From contig CM074804.1 in assembly GCA_037447605.1 (NCBI GenBank), forward strand, positions 8,037,909-8,101,908: a stretch of 64,000 nucleotides of DNA, written 5' to 3'. The notes beneath the pieces were generated by a model, which was not told where the DNA came from, did no database searches, and saw only the letters and a list, made by a program, of their open reading frames with translations. A program made the position numbers and the translations under genes. Of this stretch, positions 10,083 to 62,140 are shown piece after piece (position 1 is the stretch's first letter; each line of letters opens with the position of its first letter). The stretch comes from Zygnema circumcarinatum SAG 698-1b. Taxonomy: Eukaryota > Plantae > Zygnematophyceae.

Positions 10083-21067
<10,985 letters not shown>

Positions 21068-22455: not shown

Positions 22456-24494
22456 ATGAGCTTCATATTCGGCAAGCGGAAGACTCCGGCAGGTGCGTGC
22501 AGCCGCCCTGCCATCTGGTCCCTGCCTCCATATTCCCTTTGACCTATACTCTTCGCTTTACTTAAAAACGTTCGTTTGCATCTTGAACCATTTCTTCTTA
22601 AGGAATCAGGAAGGTGGTGGAAGAGTCAACTTGGTTGCCAAACATTGAACAGGAAAGTGGAGTTTGGCTGTGGCTATTGCAGAGCTCCTGCGAGAAAACA
22701 AGCGCATGCTGGATCGCTCCATTCGGGACATCGAGCGGGAGAGACAGCAGTTGCAGGCGCAGGAGAAGAAACTGATCGCAGAAATTAAGAAGACTGCAAA
22801 ACAGGGGCAGATGGTGGGCCCTTTGCTTTTTTGTCGCTCCCGCAATGAGCCATTTGTTCAGTGCGTGCATCATGACGAAGTGCAGGGTTCATCATCTTAA
22901 TTTATATGCCTTCTTTTTTAGTTTTGGATGACGTGTATTGTTTGCATTCATTCATTGCCAAATGTCGATACTGTGTACGCGAAATATGCATGTGATTATG
23001 TATTCTTTATCGAATGAATAGAGAGGTCTGCTTTATCGCCTTCTTTCTGCAGAAACGTTTCGCTTGCCTAGTTGGATAGTTGTTCTGCACTTAACATGAC
23101 TAGTTTTGCCATTTTGTGTTTCAATTTACGTCGAAATTCTTATTTTTCTCCCACTGCTTTGCTCAGAAAACTCGACTGTGTAAAGGCGTCTGTGTTTTCC
23201 GTACTAATGCTCTCGCAGGGAGACCGGTTTGCAGGGAGCTGTGAGGGTTATGGCAAAGGATCTTATTCGAACAAGGCACCAAATAACAAAGTTTTATGGG
23301 CTGAAGTCTCAGCTGCAGGGCATTTCATTAAGAATACAGGTAAGAAGGCAGCTTTTTATCCAATACTCAATATCCATTTTAGGTGCATTTTGGTAAAGCA
23401 AAAGCTTGAGCCTCTCAGGCAAGCATTAGAAGCGGATCAGCTCCAACCTGATGAGACGTTTTTGCATTTGAAGGGCGTGTTCTGCCAGCTGTTGAAAGTT
23501 TTGTGTTTGTGTACAGACTCTGAAGTCGACACAGGCCATGGCGGAAGCCATGAGGGGAGTCACGAAGGCCATGGGCCAAATGAACAAGCAGCTCAACCTG
23601 CCCGCGCTCCAAAAGATAATGCAGGAGTTTGAGCGTCAGAATGAGAAGATGGAAATGACTTCGGAAATGATGGGGGATGCCATTGATGATGCCTTGGAAG
23701 GAGACGAGGAAGAGGAGGAAACGGAGGAGCTCGTGAATCAAGTTTTGGATGAAATTGGAATTGATTTGGATCAGCAGGTTCGTGCTCTCTTCTTTGGAAT
23801 ACGATATCTTGTCAATTGCTCAATATGTTACAAAAATTCAAGGGTTGGACGCTCGATCAAATTACCTGATCCATGTCATTGGTTGAAGTTGCTGCGAGTC
23901 CCCATGAATTCAGCTCATGCCGTCGTTAGTGCAAAAAGTTGGGTCAGTTAGGTCCATCAGCAGACTCGGATTGACTTCAAATTCACTTACTCTCTCCCAA
24001 TGCAAAGACCATTCCTTCTATCTAAAAGGCACATACACTTAATTATCGAAAGCACTCACCCGCATGTATGGTCTAGTAAAGCAGAAGGTCATATTGCTGC
24101 TGTTCAGTAGATGCGGTAAGGCACATTCGTCTGTATATAGTCTAAGCGGGGGGGAGATGGGAAGGGAGGAAGAGAGAGAGAGGGATTCCTGGGATTCCAC
24201 TTTTCCTTCTCCCCACCCTCCTTCCAGATGCATGCGGCCTGTCTCCCATGCTGCCAATAATCTCCATTAGCAAGCCCCTGAATCTCTTACTGACGGGAAT
24301 TTAAACATTTTTCTGCCTTGCCCCTCCTTCCGCAGCTTGTCAACGCTCCTGCGGTTGCCGCCCAGCCCCAGGTGCAGGCCACAGCCGCCAAAGTTGCTCA
24401 GCCGGCGGGAGCAGGGGGAGGAGGCCCGCCCCCTGAAGGCGACGGCATAGACAGCGACTTGCAAGCTCGGCTGGACAACTTGAGGCGGCTGTAA
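22456..24494 (+). CDS. VPS2: ESCRT-III subunit VPS2/CHMP2 (Snf7 family), 5 exons
   Basis: MSFIFGKRKTPA|ELLRENKRMLDRSIRDIERERQQLQAQEKKLIAEIKKTAKQGQM|GAVRVMAKDLIRTRHQITKFYGLKSQLQGISLRIQ|TLKSTQAMAEAMRGVTKAMGQMN...|...DSDLQARLDNLRRL* (MIM1 motif). All introns are GT-AG. Confidence 0.97.
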
Positions 24495-24974
24495 AGGCGC
24501 AATGTACATATATATGTATGGCTAGTCGTGTGATGCTTAACGGGGAGTGATATTTTTTACGCTCATGGAGCACCTGATTATAGTCCTCGAATGACTGGGT
24601 ACTGAGTGGTGGGGCCAACATAAGTAGGCTGTGTGGGAGGAGTTTTATGTTCCAGTGCAAACATTTGTTTCAAGAGCTGTTGATTCTGTTTTCACGGCGG
24701 AGGGCGACCTTCCCTTCCCCACCCCCCTCCATCCCTCTCTCTCCCTCTCCCACCACCTGGACAATCACTCTCGATGCAATACTGTCAGAGAAGGTGATGA
24801 CAAGGTTACAAAGACAAGTGCTGGCGATTCAGCCAACCAACTCCTAATCATTTCTATCACCTCAGTGCAGTGATGATGCAAATAGACCAATGCGCATGCC
24901 AACAGGCCATGTAGATTGAAAAGCCCATGTTTCAAAAGATTCCGCCCGCACGTTGGTTCTCGACCGACCAACCA

Positions 24975-25135
24975 TACCAACGGTTTCAGTCATTGGCAAT
25001 GGCTGGCTTGGTAGCCAGCCAATGGTTGCGACCATTGGCAATAGTTGGGTGGGGCGGGAATCAATTGGTCCAATGGTTGCATTAATTGGCAACTTTTGGC
25101 TGTGTAGCCAGACCAATGGTTGCAACCGTTGGCAA
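24975..25135 (+). repeat. Palindromic CCAATGGTTGCAACCATTGG minisatellite, diverged copy
   Basis: Same 42/50-bp alternating units (…tagccagccaatggttgc…cattggcaat / …gggtggggcgggaatcaat…) as at 27330-27760 and 28640-28850, in the same orientation. Confidence 0.85.
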
Positions 25136-25444
25136 TCTACACGCAGGAGCAGCAGAAACATACCAACATAGTGCTGCAAAAAACAGGTATAGAGAGAGTC
25201 ATACAATCAAAAAGACCCTTTTTCATCCAAAAGGACAGCCTTTTAAGGCAACAAAATTACAACTGACAATTTCTGACACAGTTATTGTGCTACGTGGACT
25301 CAAGGACTGTGGACCACTACAGAGCGTGACAATTGTCACTTTGTGCTTCAATTCGAAACAAAAAAGCCAAGCATCATGCAAGAGATGCTTCTGTAGCGGG
25401 CCACACTTCTCTCCAACCAAAAAAGAAAATTGCCTTATTGCCTC

Positions 25445-26453
25445 CTACTCTATTTTTACAACCTGTCTAAATCAAGGACACAAAGGACATTTGAAGCCCT
25501 GGCCATCCTCTGATGGCAAAAACACTCCTCTGGGATCAGTCCACATCGGATGGAGAGGCTTCACTTGCAGCGATTTGTCCAAGCGGGCGAGTGACTCGCG
25601 CAGAAGAGCCGATTCACGCGCCAAGGCCGCATTGCTCGCCTCGATATCCCAACCGCTGTTCAGCCTTTCATGGATGGTAACCAAATCTTGGAGGTCGCTT
25701 CCCAGCTTCCGTTTCCAAGAAGAGGAGCTCTGCAAATTTCTTCCCACTCCCATTTTCCCTTCCCCGGGACCATTGCGGCGGCGGCTGTACTGCGGCTCAC
25801 TGAATGCATTTTGGCTTGCACTGAACACTGGCGAGGAGTCGCGGAACAGAGGGCGCCTCGCACTGAAGAGTGGCTCAGGCTCATCATAGAGCGGCGCCTT
25901 CAAGTTCGGGTAATCCAAGGACTTGGCATAATAATTCGAGTGGCGGACATTGGGATATGTCTTTACAATCTGAGGAGGCTGTATTGCAAGCAAGAGATCA
26001 GAAAACGCCAAATCAGTCAAAGGGATGCATACAAACCCTCAAAACTAGCCCATACAAAAGCAAGCAGCACCAACGCAAAAGGCACTTTCCGATGCTAACA
26101 ACCCTTAAAACAAAAAGCTTGAAATCTTTGAAAGGTGCAGCAAGTCATACCCGGCGAGGATTCGCTAACTCCTTTGCGAACTCCTCGTGCAACCAGTCCA
26201 CCGCGAAAAGGTAGGCCTTTCCGAGTTCCGTGGCGCCCACAAGCAGCCACGCCCAAGCGCTGTATCCAAGCACCGCCATGGCAGCCAGCGCATGCCAGGA
26301 GACGCTGCAAAAAACGAAATAAAGGTTTTCCAGGTGCGGGCGGGCGGCTGCAGCAGCCTTCAGCCCGCCGCCCAACGCCGCTCCGAGCAGCTGCATCACT
26401 TGAAGCCAGAGGACGCAGAAAGCTGCCGCCGTGGCAGCACCTGGCACAGCCAT
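25445..26453 (-). CDS. Unknown ~245-aa protein: two N-terminal hydrophobic segments, a Ser/Pro-rich linker and a C-terminal coiled coil; 3 exons
   Basis: Exon 1 MAVPGAATAAAFCVLWLQ...LAAMAVLGYSAWAWLLVGA...ELANPRR|GTATGA. Exon 2 after aatacAG: PPQIVKTY...IEASNAALARESALLRESLARLDKSLQ|GTGAAG. Exon 3 after tagacAG: VVKIE*. All junctions are phase 0 and in frame. A CT-rich leader lies upstream. No family recognised. Confidence 0.6.
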
Positions 26454-26539
26454 GGATGAGCAGGAGAGAGAGAGAGAGCGAGAGAGAGAGAGAGAGAGCG
26501 AGAGAAGAGAGGGAGGGTGAGTGAGCGAGAGAGAGAGAG

Positions 26540-28850
26540 AGAGCGGGTGGTCGGTGAGGGAGGGAGGGAGGGAGGGAGACATGACAGCCCGGGCCGCGGG
26601 CGAGGCCTTGGGGAGGGACCCGGGCAGACCAAACCTATTACAGGCTGCCCCATATGCGAGGCAAGCGTCCGCGATTGGGCGAGCGTCGGCTGGGCAGCTC
26701 AAGTTTGGCAGCGAGCTGCCCGGACGACAAAGGGGTGGCCCAAAATGGCTGGCCGCTCGCCTACCTCATCTCCCCTGTGGATCAGACAGTACGGACGGAC
26801 AGGTGGCGCCACCGCCGTGGGGGAATGCTGACGTACGGAGCGCGCGACGTGACGGGACGCGCCGTAGGGGGGCTGCCCCTGATCGGAATCAGGGCGACGG
26901 AGGACCAGAAAGAATTGCAGCTGCCCGGCCGCCGCTCGCCCAATCGCGGACGATTCATTCGCTGGGAAGGTAAAATAAACCATTTGAATGCTGCCCGGCG
27001 CCAAACTTGAGCTGCCCGGCCGACGCTCGCCCAATCGCGGACGTTTGCTTCGAGGACAGGGCAGCAGAAAACAGTTTATGGCTGCCAAGGACTAAACCTT
27101 CAGCTGCCCGGACGACGCACGCCCAATCGCGGACGTTTGCTTCACGGTTGGGGCAGCCAAAACCATTTCCGATCTGCCCGTGAACAGACTTCAGCTGCCC
27201 GGCCGACGCTCGCCCAATCGCGGACGTCCGCGAAGGGTAGCCGAAAACATTCCGGGCCAAGGGCTGGACGGACGACCATGGGCTGGATCAACCATTGGAA
27301 TGGTCGGGATTTGCAAACCGTTGGTTCCGGATCTAGCCAACCATTGGATCCAATGGTTGGGTGGGGCGGGAATAAATGGTCCAATGGTTGCAATCATTGG
27401 CAATGGTTGGCTGGACAGCTAGCCAATGGTTGAAACCATTGGCAATGGTTGGCTAGATAGCCAGCCAATGGTTGCAACCATTGGCAATGATTGGGTGGGG
27501 CGGGAATCAATGGTCCAACGGTTGCAGTTATTGCCAATGGTTGGCTTGATAGCCAGCCAATGGTTGCAACCATTGGCAATGGTTGGGTGGAGCGGGAATC
27601 AATAGTCCAATGGTTGAAGTTTCTTGCAATGGTTGGCTGGGAAGCTATCCAATGGTTACAGCCATTGGCAATGATTGGGTGGGGCGGGAATCAATGGTCC
27701 AATGGTTGCAGTTATTGGCAATGGGTTGCTGGGAAGTTAGCCAATGGTTACAACCATTGAGAGGGGGGAAAAGGAACAGAGAGCGAGAGAGCGAGAGAGA
27801 GCAGGTGGTCGGTGAGGAAGGGAGGGAGACATGACAGCCCGGGCCGCGGGGCGAGGCCTTGAGGGACCCGGGCAGCCCAAACCTATTACAGGCTGCCCTC
27901 TATGCGAGGCAAGCGTCCGCGATTGGGCGAGCGTCGGCCGGGCAGCTCAAGTTTGGCAGCGAGCTGCCCGGACGACAAAGGGGTGGCCCAAAATGGCCGG
28001 TCGCGCGCCTACCTCATCTCCCCTGTGGATAATACTGTACGGACGTAGAGGTGGCGCCACCGCCGTGGAGGAATGCTGCTGTACGGTGCGCGCGACGTGA
28101 CGGGACGCGTTGTACGTGGGCTGCACCTGATCGGAATCGCGGCGACGGAGGACCAGGAAGAATTTCAGCTGCCCGGCCGCCGCTCGCCCAATCGTGGACG
28201 GTTGATTCGCTGGGAGGGCAGAATAGAACATTTGAGTGCTGCCCGGCGCCAAACTTGAGCTGACTCGGCCGACGCTCGCCCAATCGCGGACGTTTGCTTC
28301 GAGGATGGGGCAGCAGAAAACAGTTTAGGGCTGCCCTGGACCAAACCTTCAGCTGCCCGGACGACGCACGCCCAATCGCGGACGTTTGGTTCACGGTTGG
28401 GGCAGCCAAAACCATTTCCGATCTGCCCGTGAACAGACTTCAGCTGCCCGGCCGACGCTCGCGGAATCGCGGACACTTGCCTGGCGTATAGGGCAGCCCG
28501 TAATAGTTTTGGGCTGCCCGGGGTCCTCACCAAGGCCTCGAACCGCCGCGAAGGGCAGCCGAAAACATTCCGGGCCAAGGGCTCTACGGACCATGGGTTT
28601 GGATCAAACATCGGAATGGTTGCGATTTGCAAACCGCTGGTTCCGATCTAGCCAACCAGTGGATACAATGGTTGGGTGTGGCGGGAATCAATGGTCCAAT
28701 GGTTGCAGTCATTGGCAATGGTTAACTTGGTAGCCGCCAATGGTTGCAACCATTGGCAATGGTTGAATGGGGCGGGAAGCAATGGTCCAATAGTTGTATT
28801 CATTGGCAATGGTTGGCTGGATAGCCAGCCAATGGTTGCAACCATTGAGA
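26540..28850. mobile_element. Tandem duplication of a ~1.25-kb composite repeat unit (putative non-autonomous element) flanked by GA-rich tracts
   Basis: Unit starts ggtggtcggtgagg...gacatgacagcccgggccgcgg (atgacagccc at 26581 and 27831, offset 1250). Both units end caaccattgagagggggaaaa (~27752, ~28839). Each holds the 92-bp repeat array and the CCAAT satellite. No coding capacity recognised. Confidence 0.6.
27852..28540. repeat. Fold-back module: ~95-100-bp inverted repeats enclosing a ~92-bp tandem array with a conserved 34-bp core
   Basis: 27852-27947 is the reverse complement (roughly 85% by eye) of 28442-28540. The core AGCTGCCCGGCCGACGCTCGCCCAATCGCGGACG starts at 28167, 28258, 28351 and 28442 (unit B) and at 26919, 27010, 27102 and 27193 (unit A), with one inverted copy at 27914-27947 and 26666-26699. 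Confidence 0.85.
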
Positions 28851-29158
28851 GGGGGAAAAAGGGAGCGAGGGAGAGAGGGAAAGGGGGAGAGGGAGAGTGA
28901 GGGAGGGGGTGAGAGAGTGAGGGAGAGAGAGATAGAGGGAGAAAGGGGGAAATGACATTGATAGAGGCATATTTCCATTTCACAGAATGTGCTGAGAACA
29001 GAGGTAGAGGCTTGCTGGTTGCTTTTGAAACCCCTGCTTGGAACCTTCTCTTTGATAAACAACAGTTTGGAAAAGCTGAGGCCAAGAAGATAAGAAGACG
29101 ATATTCAGCAGCTTCTGTACCGAGGGATGAGGAACTGCGATCCTAATGAGAGCTAGCA

Positions 29159-46756: not shown

Positions 46757-47156
46757 GAAGGAGCTTGATGGGCTGCTCGCCCTCTTAATAGGGACCTTTA
46801 CTCTTTACCTCACTCTCCTCCTGCTGCCTCTTCTTCGCCTGTCTGAAGGAGGGGCCATGGCTGCCATGCGACGAAGGTGCCCAAGGTTGTGACGTTAGCG
46901 TCACTGAGGATGACGTAAGTGATACGCGTGGAGATGGTGACACGTTGCATTGCATTGCACTTTCCTTTGGCCCCTTTTTCCCTCCCTTGGGGTTCGCACC
47001 TGCTTATGGAGTGTGATGAAACTTGGGGAAGACTTGGGAAACTGGTTCTCTCAAAAGTTGGGAAAAGGTTTTGCTTTTTCGAGAGAGGCCATGTAAGGGG
47101 AATGTGTCGACTTGTGGAAGAATTGAGAACAGTTTTGACATTATTTTTTTCTTTGT

Positions 47157-47215
47157 CAATGATTGCAACCATTGGACCATTGATTCGCAACCACCCACCA
47201 ATGGTTGTAACCACT
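47157..47215 (-). repeat. Short dispersed copy of the CCAAT palindromic satellite, in inverted orientation
   Basis: Reverse complement reads ggttacaaccattggtgggtggttgcgaatcaatggtccaatggttgcaatcattg, matching the 27.3-27.8 kb satellite. Confidence 0.75.
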
Positions 47216-47893
47216 AGCAGCAATCACCCTTCAAGGTCTGGATGTCGATAAAGGCCAACTCTTTTGCAGCTTCCCCACTGACAAAAAAAGCAAGAAGAGC
47301 CTAAAACGACCCCCCCCCGCCCCTCCCCTCCCTCAGTTTTTCCACATTGACTTATGTACATGTCACATGTTTTGTTTTGTTTTTGTCTCTTTCCTTTCCT
47401 TGTATGGAAGAGGCATTGCCTTGCCACGCCCTGCAGAACCCTCTACATGAGAAAACGAAGAAAGGAATGATGTAAAGAACAGGATGAACACATGGCAACG
47501 CATCACATCATCACCCATTCGACAAGGCAAAAAGTGACGTATCCGGGTCTTCTCTTTATTTCAAAAGGGACAGCGTTGGCATTGAAATTTTAAAAAAAGT
47601 TTGAATTTTCAATTGTGCCTACAAAAAAAAATGTGCCGAAAATAACCTGCCAGTGAAGGTAGGTGCAAAAAAAGAATCTCATGTGTCCCCCTGTCAGAAA
47701 GTTAAGAAAGAGAAAATAAATCCAAGGCGAGCCATGCCTTGCTTCCTGCCTGCCATGCAATTAGGGTTAAACAGCGACTGAATTCAGCGAAATTTCTGTC
47801 CAGGAAATGGCCCAACATGTAAAGGAGCAAGTGCTCGCATAGCCCCCAAAATTAAACATTTAATCTGTCGAGAATTCGAAGTCGATGATCTGA

Positions 47894-52836
<4,943 letters not shown>

Positions 52837-57960: not shown

Positions 57961-60743
57961 CTAATAGCCATGATGATGATGATGCCCATGACGAGCTCGG
58001 CGGCGCCCCCCATGTGAAGAAGCATGATGGAAAGGATAACCCTGCCGCATGTAATCCTCCGCCGACCCATATCCCACCACGATGCCTCTTGGGTCTATGT
58101 GAGGGCCCCATCCATGAAAGCCAACATTCGGCATGCCCCCATTCATGGCAGCCATGCCATGGCGACCCATGACAGACCCATGAGGGGCATACCCCACATT
58201 GAACTCATGCTCCATCTCCTCCTCCCCATGCCGCATGGAGCTGCTGCTCCCTCCAAGGGCACCTCCTCCCCCCCCAGCTACTACCCCCATACCCTCCCTC
58301 CCTTCACCCGAGTCTCTCTCCCAGCCCCTCTCTCCTTGCGGCCCGTTCCGTCTCCCGTCATCATGTAAAGAAAGACCCACATGGAACGAGCTTCTTCCTG
58401 TACCGTTCTCGGGCACACTGCCTCTGTTTCTCTCAATTTGGGGCTCACCTTCCGCGAAACCCATGTGCGGAACTGAGCCTACATTATGACCCATGTGACC
58501 CATCATCCCCTGCCCATCCATCATGCCCCCTCCTCCCCCCTGCTGCTGCTCCACACTCTCTCCTCCATCCATAAGAGGAAGACCTCCTCCTCCATGAGCA
58601 TCTCCTGGGAAAGTCCCTTGACTCAAAAGGAAGTTGGGAACAGAAGGTCGGAACCCTTGCGGAACACGAGATTCAAAGAGCATTATTCCATTGGTTTCAA
58701 TGAGTTGCCCTCCGAAGGTAGGTCTGACTTTAGCTCGCCTCTTCCCCTCCCTCGCATAGAGTGTCTTGTTCGCCGCCATGGATGGGTTTCTCACCCTCTC
58801 GTTCGTCACTTTCTGCGTTGTCTGTTTCTGTCGCCCTCCCTCCGTCCACTCTCTCCGTACGTCTCCCCCACCCCCACTTACCATACCTCCCACTTTTGCT
58901 CGGTCCATCTCCACAAAGAACGATTTCGACTCCCTGTCATTTCTCGCCTCTCCTACTTCTCTACCAGAGCAATTCTCTCCCTCTCTTTGCTCCTCTCTGC
59001 CCCCAGCTACGCTCCCTCCTTCCCAACCTTGCCTCCCCTGTTTTCCTCCATTTCCCAACTCAGCCCTAACCACACCTTCTCCACTCCCTCTTCTCCCAAC
59101 CACCCCTCCTTCACCCTCCCTCCCTCCCTCTCTCACACCTCCTGCATCTTCCTCCGCATCCAATCCCCCTTCATGCATTATCCCTACTTCCACTCCATCC
59201 ACCCACATCTCCTCTCCCTCTACACTCCCATACCTAACCCTTTTTCTCGGCTTCTTGTCCTTTGCCCCCGCCGGCCTTCCCGGCTTCCTTTTCAGCACTT
59301 CTCCAGTCCCATCAACATTCTCCATATAGCTCGCATTATAGGCCTCTCTAATTCCCCCCAACTCCCCCCCCCCACTACCCCTCCCTCCCCCTCCCACACT
59401 CGCCCTCCCCACCCCTAAGTTTCCACCCCCTTCACTCTCTACCAACCCACTTTCTCCCGCCATTGCCTCCTCTTCTCCCGCACTGCTGCTTTCACCCTCT
59501 GTTTCTTCACTCTCTTCCTCTGAATCTGACTCTAAATCCAAAGAAGCGACGTCTTTAGCACTCAGCTTCTTAGAGGAACACTTTTGTAGAGCAAAAATTC
59601 TTGCTAATAAACTTTGCCGCTTTAGCGGCTTTCCTCCTCCCTTCTCCGTAGTAGAGCCATTAAGAGTTATTTTTCTCCCTTCTCCCACAGTCGGATCCTT
59701 CAAACCATAATTTCGCAAAGCAGCGCGAAGCATTTGAATGTCTTCTTCCTTTGCTTTGAGAGATGCACGAAGCTCGTTCCGACTCTTTTGAATATCCCTG
59801 CAGAAAAGGAGTGTGGCTCACTCATCATTTCTGCTACTTAATTAGCTAAGATTTAAATCATGTACAACCTTAAGCCACCCAAATTTACTCACCTCGCCTT
59901 CCGACAGTCTTGAGCATGGAGGGCCATATCGACTGCATTTCGACCGGTTCGAGAAAACGTTTCCCAACTCACAAACATGATAGGTCTCTTTCCAGCATCC
60001 AAATCCACCTGCCCCCCACATGCTTCCCCCCACCTCAATTTAACCTCCTCTGGTCAACACAAGGGTCCTTTCCTATACCTCCTAATGCATCGAAATTTCA
60101 CTTATTGTCTAGGCGAACCCCTACAAGCCCTTTCATCCTTACCTTATCGTTTTTCGTCCTCTTGACATTGGAATCCTCTGTTTCCATAAGGGGGTATTCA
60201 TCCAAAGTGGCCCACCACCCTGCTTTGCCCCTTGGACCTCTCCTCCTCTTCCCACAACCTTCAGGAGCCATCACCATCACTCTTGGCCTTCCTCTTGACT
60301 TCTCTGCATCTGCCGGAGCAAAGGCAGTCATTTCCGCCGCTTTACTACTACCACCCACTTCCTGCTCAGAGGGAACTAAAACTCCATTTTCTTTTCCTTT
60401 CCCATTTCCGCTGCTTGTGATTACTCGCGTTGCTGCAGTTTGACACTCGCTGCACAGCAGAGGGAGAAGCTCCTTCATGAAAGCAAGAGGAGCACTCTGA
60501 GGAACAGACGAGTCTGTGGAAGGAGGGGGGGTTTGTAAAGGTTGTTTCTGAGGGGTTTCTTGAGCTGGGGGAAGAGCACCCTTCGCTTCCACTACACTTG
60601 GAATTGGTGCAGTGTATGGGTAGTGAGAAGTAGTGTATGGGAACGAACCACCTGCAGCGGGATAAGGGTAGGAGGACACAGGAGGAGTGTAGGTAGAATA
60701 AGAAGCTGACCCAGTAGAGGGGTTTGCAGAATACCAATGCCAA

Positions 60744-60778
<35 letters not shown>

Positions 60779-62140
60779 AGACTGTTCATTAGAGCTCGGC
60801 GGAGGTTCATCCTGCTGTGGACTTTGTTTGGAAATTGAGAAATGCAGCTCCTGCGGAGGAAGAGCAGGGGCTGCTTGCTGTTCATTGAGAGGCAGCTGCA
60901 ATTGCAGAAGAGAAGTCATTGACGTTCCAGGTGGACAGAACAGTAGAGGGGTTTGAGTAGAGTGGGAGAGAGGAGGTAGTGCTTGCTGCCGTTCTTCCGG
61001 CAAGCTGCGGGACGGAGACTTCTGAACTTTCGGAGGTTCTAAGCAAAAATTTATCTCTTGGATGTTGTTCCCAACTAGCAGCTCCTGCTCTCCTTGTGCA
61101 TTTTCTTGACCTGCAGTTCCCAAGTTGCTGGTAGTAGCTTCGTTTACTATCGCTGGTGACTGAGAGTCTTTTTCGCCGATTGTATCAGATGCGGAAGGAT
61201 CAGTACGCCCCTTTCTCCTAATCTCCTCTTCTTTATTTACAAAATTAGGGTTTCCATGCTTATTCTGCTGCTGAAGCATCCTCCAAGCATCGCTATCTGC
61301 TGACCTGATGTCATCCTGTGGGGTCCACACCATTTCTGGATGACCCTCTCCCTCCAACCCTATTTTTTCCCGAGAGTCTTCAATTCTAACAACACTCCTC
61401 TCCTCCTCCTTATCCCCCTCTCTCTCCCCCTCCTTCAACACACCGGTCCCCTCTCGCTCCTCCCACTGCACCAAGTTGTCACCCGGCCGACTGACATCAC
61501 CACCATTCTTCTGCTCGTCAACATCACTCATTCCCCTCTCTTCTTCCTCCCTTCTAACATCATTCCCACTCACCCCAACAACCTCACTACCTTCTCTCCC
61601 ACCATCTCTCCCTCCACCCTCACTCCCACCCCCTTCTCTCCACGCCTCTCTCCCACCTTCTCTGCCTCCACCCTCACTCCCACCTTCTCTGCCTCCACCC
61701 TCACTCCCACTCCCTTCTCTCCACGCCTCTCTCCCACCTTCTCTCCCTCCACCCTCCCTCCCACCCCCTTCTCTCCACGCCTCCCCCACACCTTCTCTCC
61801 CTCCACTCTCACTCCCACCCCCTTCTCTCCACGCGTCTCTCCCTCCTCTCCCTCCACCCTCACTCCCACTCCCCTCTCTCCACGCCTCTCTCCCTCCTCG
61901 CCCTCCACCCTCACTCCCACCCCCTTCTCTCCACGCCTCCCCCCCACTTTCCCCCACATTCTCTTCCTGCTGCTCCTCCCTCTCCACCGCCTGCAGGAGC
62001 CCCTCCACTCTCTCTATCCCCCCGGACCCTCCCTTTGCGTTGATCATCTCCACAGCCTCATGACCCATCACATCCGCCGCCGCCACATCCTCCTTTAAAT
62101 CTGTAAAATTGCCACTCTCAGGCCCCATCACAGCCCACAA
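57961..62140 (-). CDS. Unknown ~1,350-aa largely low-complexity protein with a short conserved-looking core, coiled coil and AT-hook-like motif; 3 exons
   Basis: 680-codon ORF ending ...WWATLDEYPLMETEDSNVKRTKNDK|GTAAGG. Exon 2 after gggcAG: VDLDAGKRPIMFVSWETFSRTGRNAVDMALHAQDCRKA(R)|GTGAGT. Exon 3 after ctgcAG: DIQKSRNELRASLKAKEEDIQMLRAALRNYG... continues as the 590-aa ORF, containing KRKPGRPAGAKDKKPRKR, to HHHHHGY*. Splice phases (0, 2) are consistent. Confidence 0.72.
61590..61940 (-). repeat. Coding tandem repeat (~51 bp; (E/D)AWREGxGSEGGGRxGG) x6
   Basis: Six (E/D)AWREG motifs in the 60098-62140 ORF; the + strand shows repeated cccttctctccacgcctc. Confidence 0.85.

Follow-up and report, generated by a model that had tools for sequence, protein, structure and literature searches.

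What kind of sequence occupies positions 26464-28947 of the 64,000-nucleotide stretch of the Zygnema circumcarinatum SAG 698-1b genome (GenBank assembly GCA_037447605.1, contig CM074804.1) that we analysed, hereafter the window? A first-pass annotation, made from the letters alone, had described a duplicated composite element carrying hairpin repeats, and had left its nature between a fold-back transposon or miniature inverted-repeat transposable element (MITE) and a highly structured non-coding RNA locus. We conclude that the locus is a non-coding modular repeat block, neither a gene nor an RNA gene. The explanation that we prefer, and to which we give about an even chance, is a decayed fold-back-type, tandem-repeat-bearing repeat cassette, probably of a dispersed family, which was doubled by unequal exchange; that the block was mobile is something we infer.

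Organisation of the locus

The locus is non-coding repetitive DNA in a eukaryotic window with GT-AG introns. It is built of two units, A and B, which lie head to tail at an offset of 1248 bp, as the first estimate of about 1250 bp had it. Within each unit, three repeat types with no relation to one another form a mosaic: a GA microsatellite, a fold-back module of 0.64-0.71 kb (707 bp in unit B), and a second minisatellite, of 92-bp period, built on a CCAATGGTTG palindrome and referred to below as the CCAATGG array. The fold-back module comprises, in this order, one inverted copy of a 92-bp unit, a unique centre of 190 bp and four direct copies. The earlier account of the units had the GA-rich tracts at their beginnings and ends right, and the core array too, but it missed the CCAATGG arrays, which make up one third of each unit.

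Unit A opens with GA-rich tract 1 (26464-26580; periods 2 and 33 by Tandem Repeats Finder, TRF), directly after the ATG at 26453 of a putative minus-strand open reading frame (ORF). There follow the left arm (26593-26707, minus strand), which is one inverted 92-bp unit with its core at 26666-26699 plus flank; a 15-nt direct core start (26714-26728, plus strand), which makes a head-to-head palindrome with the inverted core (26692-26721); the unique centre (26729-26918, GC 66%); the plus-strand direct array A1-A4 (26919-27227), whose last unit, A4, is truncated after 27227 by a deletion of 69 bp; a junction with a 24-bp perfect palindrome of the CCAACCATTGG type (27228-27337); and the plus-strand CCAATGG array (27338-27760). 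GA-rich tract 2 (27761-27830) forms the A/B boundary. The parts of unit B come in the same order, with the 69 bp of right arm that unit A lacks: a left inverted arm of one inverted 92-bp unit (27843-27955, minus strand, core 27914-27947), the 15-nt direct core start (27962-27976, plus strand; head-to-head palindrome 27940-27969), the centre (27977-28166), the plus-strand direct array B1-B4 (28167-28549), which contains the right inverted arm (28434-28549), a 103-bp junction (28550-28652) starting with a degenerate half linker (28550-28593), the plus-strand CCAATGG array (28653-28848) and GA-rich tract 3 (28849-28947). The AATGACA after tract 3 resembles the ACATGACA found after tracts 1 and 2, and the tandem may be slightly longer than two copies, with the start of a partial third unit after tract 3. 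A loss in the right arm of unit A had been noticed at first pass; the deletion is real, and its size is 69 bp rather than about 80.

When A is aligned with B, 914 of 999 positions match (91.5% identity); the 85 substitutions divide into 44 transitions and 41 transversions, and there are eight indels of 8, 1, 3, 1, 69, 2, 1 and 43 nt. This amount of divergence means that the duplication is old and real, not a false assembly. Tandem repeats are prone to assembly error, which is the argument for a falsely duplicated repeat; however, collapsed or false duplicates are near-identical, and with 85 differing positions and eight indels, two of them of 69 and 43 bp, we find an artefact hardly credible. 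The head-to-tail copies with their diverged monomers have the character of a local minisatellite or tandem segmental duplication, and the A/B pair is one old tandem duplication of the whole block, GA tract and second minisatellite included. The units are not two separate insertions of an element.

The 92-bp unit of the fold-back module

Counted over the whole window with up to three mismatches, the 34-bp core has nine copies (0 expected), two on the minus strand (26666 and 27914) and seven on the plus strand, and a profile search adds a tenth, at 28258-28292, which carries a 1-nt insertion. The earlier description of one inverted and four direct cores per unit at 91-93-bp spacing is borne out, with an array period of 91-92 bp by TRF. 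Each 92-bp unit joins the conserved 34-bp core to a variable linker of 57 bp. Identity is 88-99% between corresponding units of A and B but only 52-75% between paralogous units, so that the 92-bp array long predates the duplication of the block. Of the direct units, B4 is the closest to the inverted copies (84-86% identity).

Conservation is higher in the core than in the linker: paralogues are 84.7% identical in the former and 62.1% in the latter, and since the A/B split the core shows 7 changes in 171 positions and the linker 22 in 229 (Fisher p = 0.05). The only invariant positions of the linker are GGGCAGC and CTGCCC. The linker palindromes of GGGCAGC with GCTGCCC reported at first pass are real: the window has nine instances of GGGCAG-N(11-19)-CTGCCC where 0.11 would be expected, and all are within the locus, seven in linkers and two as the head-to-head junctions after the inverted copy. 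The palindrome stems in the linkers are either invariant or broken, with no compensatory changes, and the identity matrix gives no support for a higher-order 184-bp structure in the GCTGCCC array. Protein binding to the GCTGCCC motifs is possible; gene conversion accounts equally well for the invariance of the motifs and the slower change of the core.

The CCAATGG minisatellite

The CCAATGG arrays differ in length, with about 4.6 periods of 92 bp (42+50 sub-repeats) in unit A and about two in unit B. They are the only part of the block that recurs in the window, once on the plus strand at 24964-25136 (about two periods, 86% identical to array B) and once on the minus strand at 47153-47226 (less than one period). 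Both extra copies have ragged ends and carry no fold-back module sequence. The copy at 24964-25136 is separated by about 470 bp from the 3' end of a Snf7-family gene on one side and by about 340 bp from the stop codon of the minus-strand ORF on the other; that this fragment also carries junction sequence was considered and dropped, because it aligns better to the array periods. The CCAATGG units form real hairpins (fold z about -3.5 against shuffles), and there is no homology between the two 92-bp units beyond that of shuffles. Since it has extra copies, no homology to the other 92-bp unit and a different CpG content, the CCAATGG module is a separate, independently dispersed piece. We note that two adjacent minisatellites unrelated in sequence (26919-27227 and 28167-28549; 27338-27760 and 28653-28848) have an equal period of about 92 bp.

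Inverted arms and mobility

The outermost units of the fold-back module are its most similar pair and make genuine inverted arms. When the arms of unit B (27843-27955 and 28434-28549, 113-116 nt) are aligned, 98 positions match, 15 do not and 3 columns are gaps; the arms are slightly longer than the inverted repeats of about 95 bp first reported. Unit B thus has the long terminal inverted repeats of a fold-back transposon, of which unit A keeps only 42 nt (26666-26707 and 27185-27226). The unit B module also has the general form of a MITE, being non-coding, flanked by terminal inverted repeats and, at 707 bp, below the usual limit of about 800 bp. Arms placed around a 190-bp centre are, by analogy, what is seen in non-autonomous DNA elements of the fold-back and tandem-repeat-bearing kinds, and the formation of the arms appears to be older than the block duplication.

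Several observations weigh against a transposon. The left arm is one unit plus the 15-nt core start and the four units are on the right side only, so that tandem sub-repeats are not present in both arms and, unlike in classic fold-back elements, the arms are not symmetric arrays. No target-site duplication of 2-10 bp was found flanking the inverted arms, the check that the first-pass annotation had proposed. The 8-10-bp duplication of fold-back transposons is absent, the flanks ACAGCCCGG and GAAGGGCAG being mismatched, and the only candidate is the 6-mer GCCGCG (27843-27848 and 28545-28550), which overlaps the inverted repeat and, GC-rich and near-palindromic, is equally readable as its tip. 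A profile search of the 64-kb window detected no second locus with a fold-back module, and the extra CCAATGG copies end raggedly, unlike precise transposon termini. The module has retained its CpGs, whereas an old silenced transposon is expected to lose them. Finally, a degenerate core pattern had 0 matches in collections of metagenome, viral and prokaryote-genome contigs, which do not include this alga's genome and outside which eukaryotic algal genomes in general lie. With the same scope, a 30-nt CCAATGG palindrome pattern had 0 matches in the viral contigs and a 25-nt CCAATGG pattern 0 in the metagenome and prokaryote-genome contigs; given what these collections cover, the zeros carry little weight. 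A full-text literature search returned no paper for the locus's two long motifs.

The fold-back or MITE-like transposon first proposed is accordingly retained in part: the fold-back architecture is real, and there is neither a target-site duplication nor a second module copy in 64 kb. For a MITE, both the superfamily-specific target-site duplication and high copy number are wanting (no duplication, one locus in 64 kb). A Helitron or Helentron origin was rejected, as the ends of such elements (5' TC, and 3' CTRR with a hairpin placed 10-12 nt inside the terminus) are absent; the unit ends with the CCAATGG hairpin followed directly by AGAGGGG, and no CTRR stands within 20 nt of either boundary, whichever strand is read. 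Membership of the fold-back, MITE and DTC84/pearl families fails on target-site duplication and termini. The association with microsatellites suggested at first pass is not specific: GA/CT microsatellites occur at ten or more sites in the window, and the GA flanks are therefore a trait of the spacers of this genome and no evidence of a target preference. The GA/CT tracts are a plausible substrate for unequal exchange.

The same observations bear on a purely local origin, in which slippage and fold-back template switching beside a pre-existing CCAATGG array would have produced the 92-bp minisatellite together with its inverted copy, and unequal crossing-over would then have doubled the block, so that the module never moved and exists only here. 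The single module locus in the window and the lack of a target-site duplication agree with this, as do the head-to-head palindromes (26692-26721 and 27940-27969), which resemble an inversion-duplication breakpoint, the tandem duplication, which plainly takes in flanking GA DNA, and the frequency of GA/CT tracts as likely substrates for unequal exchange. However, the outermost units are the most similar pair, as functional termini would be, and we regard a local origin as possible but rather unlikely. We keep the decayed fold-back-type cassette as our working explanation.

Coding and RNA potential

The indels between A and B shift the reading frame and the ORFs of the two units differ; the locus therefore holds no conserved protein, and the repeat period is not a multiple of 3. 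Seven ORFs in or beside the element have no Pfam match, and a 155-aa ORF across array B has no protein relatives. The claim that the element lacks coding capacity is in agreement with all of this.

As for RNA, the whole window has no Rfam match at gathering scores, and at E<=1 the region 24800-29100 gives only four sub-threshold matches (E 0.08-0.8), which we consider noise. An origin from a tRNA or SINE was rejected, as no tRNA genes were found. The whole fold-back module folds much better than shuffles (z = -10.3) because of its long arms. Single 92-bp units, however, fold no better than shuffles (z -1.5 to +1.1), and in several of these folds GGGCAGC is paired with the GCTGCCC that belongs to the core and not with its linker partner; the label "hairpin repeats" given to them was too strong. 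The 190-bp centre of unit B is likewise unstructured on both strands (z +0.8 and +1.2). Among the arm mismatches, 10 are transversions, and of the transitions 3 would permit G:U pairs in plus-strand RNA and 2 in minus-strand RNA, so that pairing is favoured on neither strand. A structured RNA locus thus finds no support beyond the inverted repeat itself.

A more specific proposal is that the locus is a source of hairpin RNA or small RNAs, in which the arms of unit B, once transcribed, would pair over about 113 nt and enclose a loop of 478 nt, a structure that could be diced. The long imperfect inverted repeat and the strong fold of the whole module are consistent with it. The absence of a strand preference in the mismatches, the Rfam results, the shuffle-like folding of the centre and of single units and the loss of most of one arm from unit A all argue the other way, and we judge such a source very unlikely.

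Composition and genomic setting

The fold-back modules have a GC content of 64% and a CpG observed/expected ratio of 1.06-1.08, compared with a window median of 0.64, which puts them among the top ~5% of 700-bp windows; the CCAATGG arrays have a ratio of 0.22-0.28. As the module is an old repeat that has kept its CpGs, it is probably unmethylated in the germ line. Such CpG retention is more in keeping with an element in open chromatin beside a promoter than with a transposon under silencing.

The left edge of the block adjoins the ATG (26453) of the putative minus-strand ORF, a two-exon frame (25472-26453) with a canonical GT-AG intron at about 25985-26151, which separates the CCAATGG fragment from the composite repeat. 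Pfam recognises no domain in this ORF, and a word search found no relatives of exon 2. This setting raises the prospect of a cis-regulatory, promoter-side cassette, in which the cores, the GCTGCCC palindromes and the CCAAT/ATTGG dyads would be clustered putative transcription-factor sites in open, unmethylated chromatin; such a function is compatible with both the fold-back cassette and the local origin. It would fit the CpG-island-like module (1.06-1.08, GC 64%), the better conservation of core than linker among paralogues and since the duplication, the restriction of invariant linker positions to GGGCAGC and CTGCCC, and the contact of the block with the ATG at 26453. Yet the neighbouring ORF is without Pfam domain or relatives, which leaves the gene start only putative, gene conversion can yield core conservation, for which p = 0.05 is marginal, and the fragment at 24964-25136 lies between two gene ends and not at a promoter. 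We consider a regulatory role unlikely.

A bolder form of the same idea, which we hold to be equally improbable, is a genome-wide family of non-autonomous elements that seek gene starts, an unmethylated mobile promoter or enhancer cassette with arrays of transcription-factor sites (CCAAT/ATTGG dyads; cores and GCTGCCC palindromes). In such a family the 34-bp cores would double as putative transposase-binding sites, and the period of about 92 bp would be a structural constraint shared by unrelated repeats. If a dispersed cassette at gene starts with clustered CCAAT-type sites were true, the algal relatives of land plants would offer a concrete case of promoter parts spread by repeats; a dispersed cassette would also give a handle on the birth of satellite-like arrays inside small mobile elements outside animals. 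Two unrelated minisatellites of equal 92-bp period, together with an old repeat that is CpG-island-like, make a small puzzle, and the main value of the locus is for repeat annotation of the genome.

Other features of the window include the Snf7-family (CHMP2/VPS2-like) gene on the plus strand (23538-24495), which lies upstream of the repeat-rich spacer. The region 19722-21067 includes a 384-aa ORF in which Pfam recognises a double-stranded-RNA-binding motif (PF00035, E = 4e-9); a pure (GA)60 microsatellite precedes this ORF by about 70 bp. A (TCTCTGT) heptamer array (18008-18185) has 25.7 copies with 93% matches, and some 580 bp at 48495-49072 consist of a C-rich (CCCCT / CTCCCCTCCCC)n tract with a GC content of 66% and a GC skew of -0.67. 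The abundance of simple repeats agrees with a Zygnema-type genome without being proof of one (PMC11096116). A nested 54/81/135-bp CT-rich tandem repeat (61589-61951) is contained in a 680-aa minus-strand ORF (60098-62140), which has no Pfam match.

A model for the origin of the block

For the fold-back-type cassette we propose the following sequence of events, whose order is inferred from the levels of divergence. A 92-bp unit with its GGGCAGC/GCTGCCC palindrome would first have expanded by unequal exchange or slippage, and the outermost unit would then have been copied in inverted orientation, giving the terminal arms of 113-116 nt around the 190-bp centre. Block, CCAATGG array and GA tract would next have been doubled head to tail; the simplest mechanism is unequal crossing-over, either between GA tracts or between arrays. 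A deletion would afterwards have removed 69 bp from the right arm of unit A, and the CCAATGG arrays would have changed in length. A dispersed family of such blocks would spread by a transposase acting in trans on the arms and cores, or by recombination.

Comparison with known systems

Fold-back elements of plants include Hairpin and SoFT. The fold-back transposon with tandem repeats in its arms is represented by Tetris of Drosophila virilis, whose arms reach 1.7 kb, with repeats on both sides and target-site duplications of 8-10 bp (PMC4079207). With Tetris-type elements the locus has in common that it is non-coding, that its long terminal inverted repeats are made of a tandemly repeatable unit, that it has a unique middle domain and that its array length is variable; such elements can seed satellite-like arrays. 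In contrast to Tetris, the locus has arms of only 113-116 nt, with repeats on one side and no target-site duplication, and its module is present at one locus in 64 kb.

The second group is the DTC84/pearl type, tandem-repeat-containing MITEs of bivalves (PMC3879986); related satellite-like arrays borne by Helentrons occur in oyster (PMC7492417). DTC84 is high-copy and has repeats of about 160 bp, an ACGG microsatellite, 11-bp inverted motifs and a putative AA target-site duplication (PMC3879986). The locus differs from it in its 92-bp units, GA microsatellite, long inverted arms and lack of a target-site duplication, in the second, unrelated array within the block, and in having an alga and not an animal as host; the DTC84/pearl termini and AA duplication are absent, and no repeat sequence is shared. 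The resemblance is one of layout: a modular series in which a flank leads into one to five core repeats in fixed variant order, followed on one side by a microsatellite and then another flank, each unit junction having a palindrome close by and the length of the array differing between copies. Judged by such analogies, the architecture closely parallels those of Tetris and of the DTC84/pearl-type MITEs, and the locus represents an undescribed repeat family of well-known architecture.

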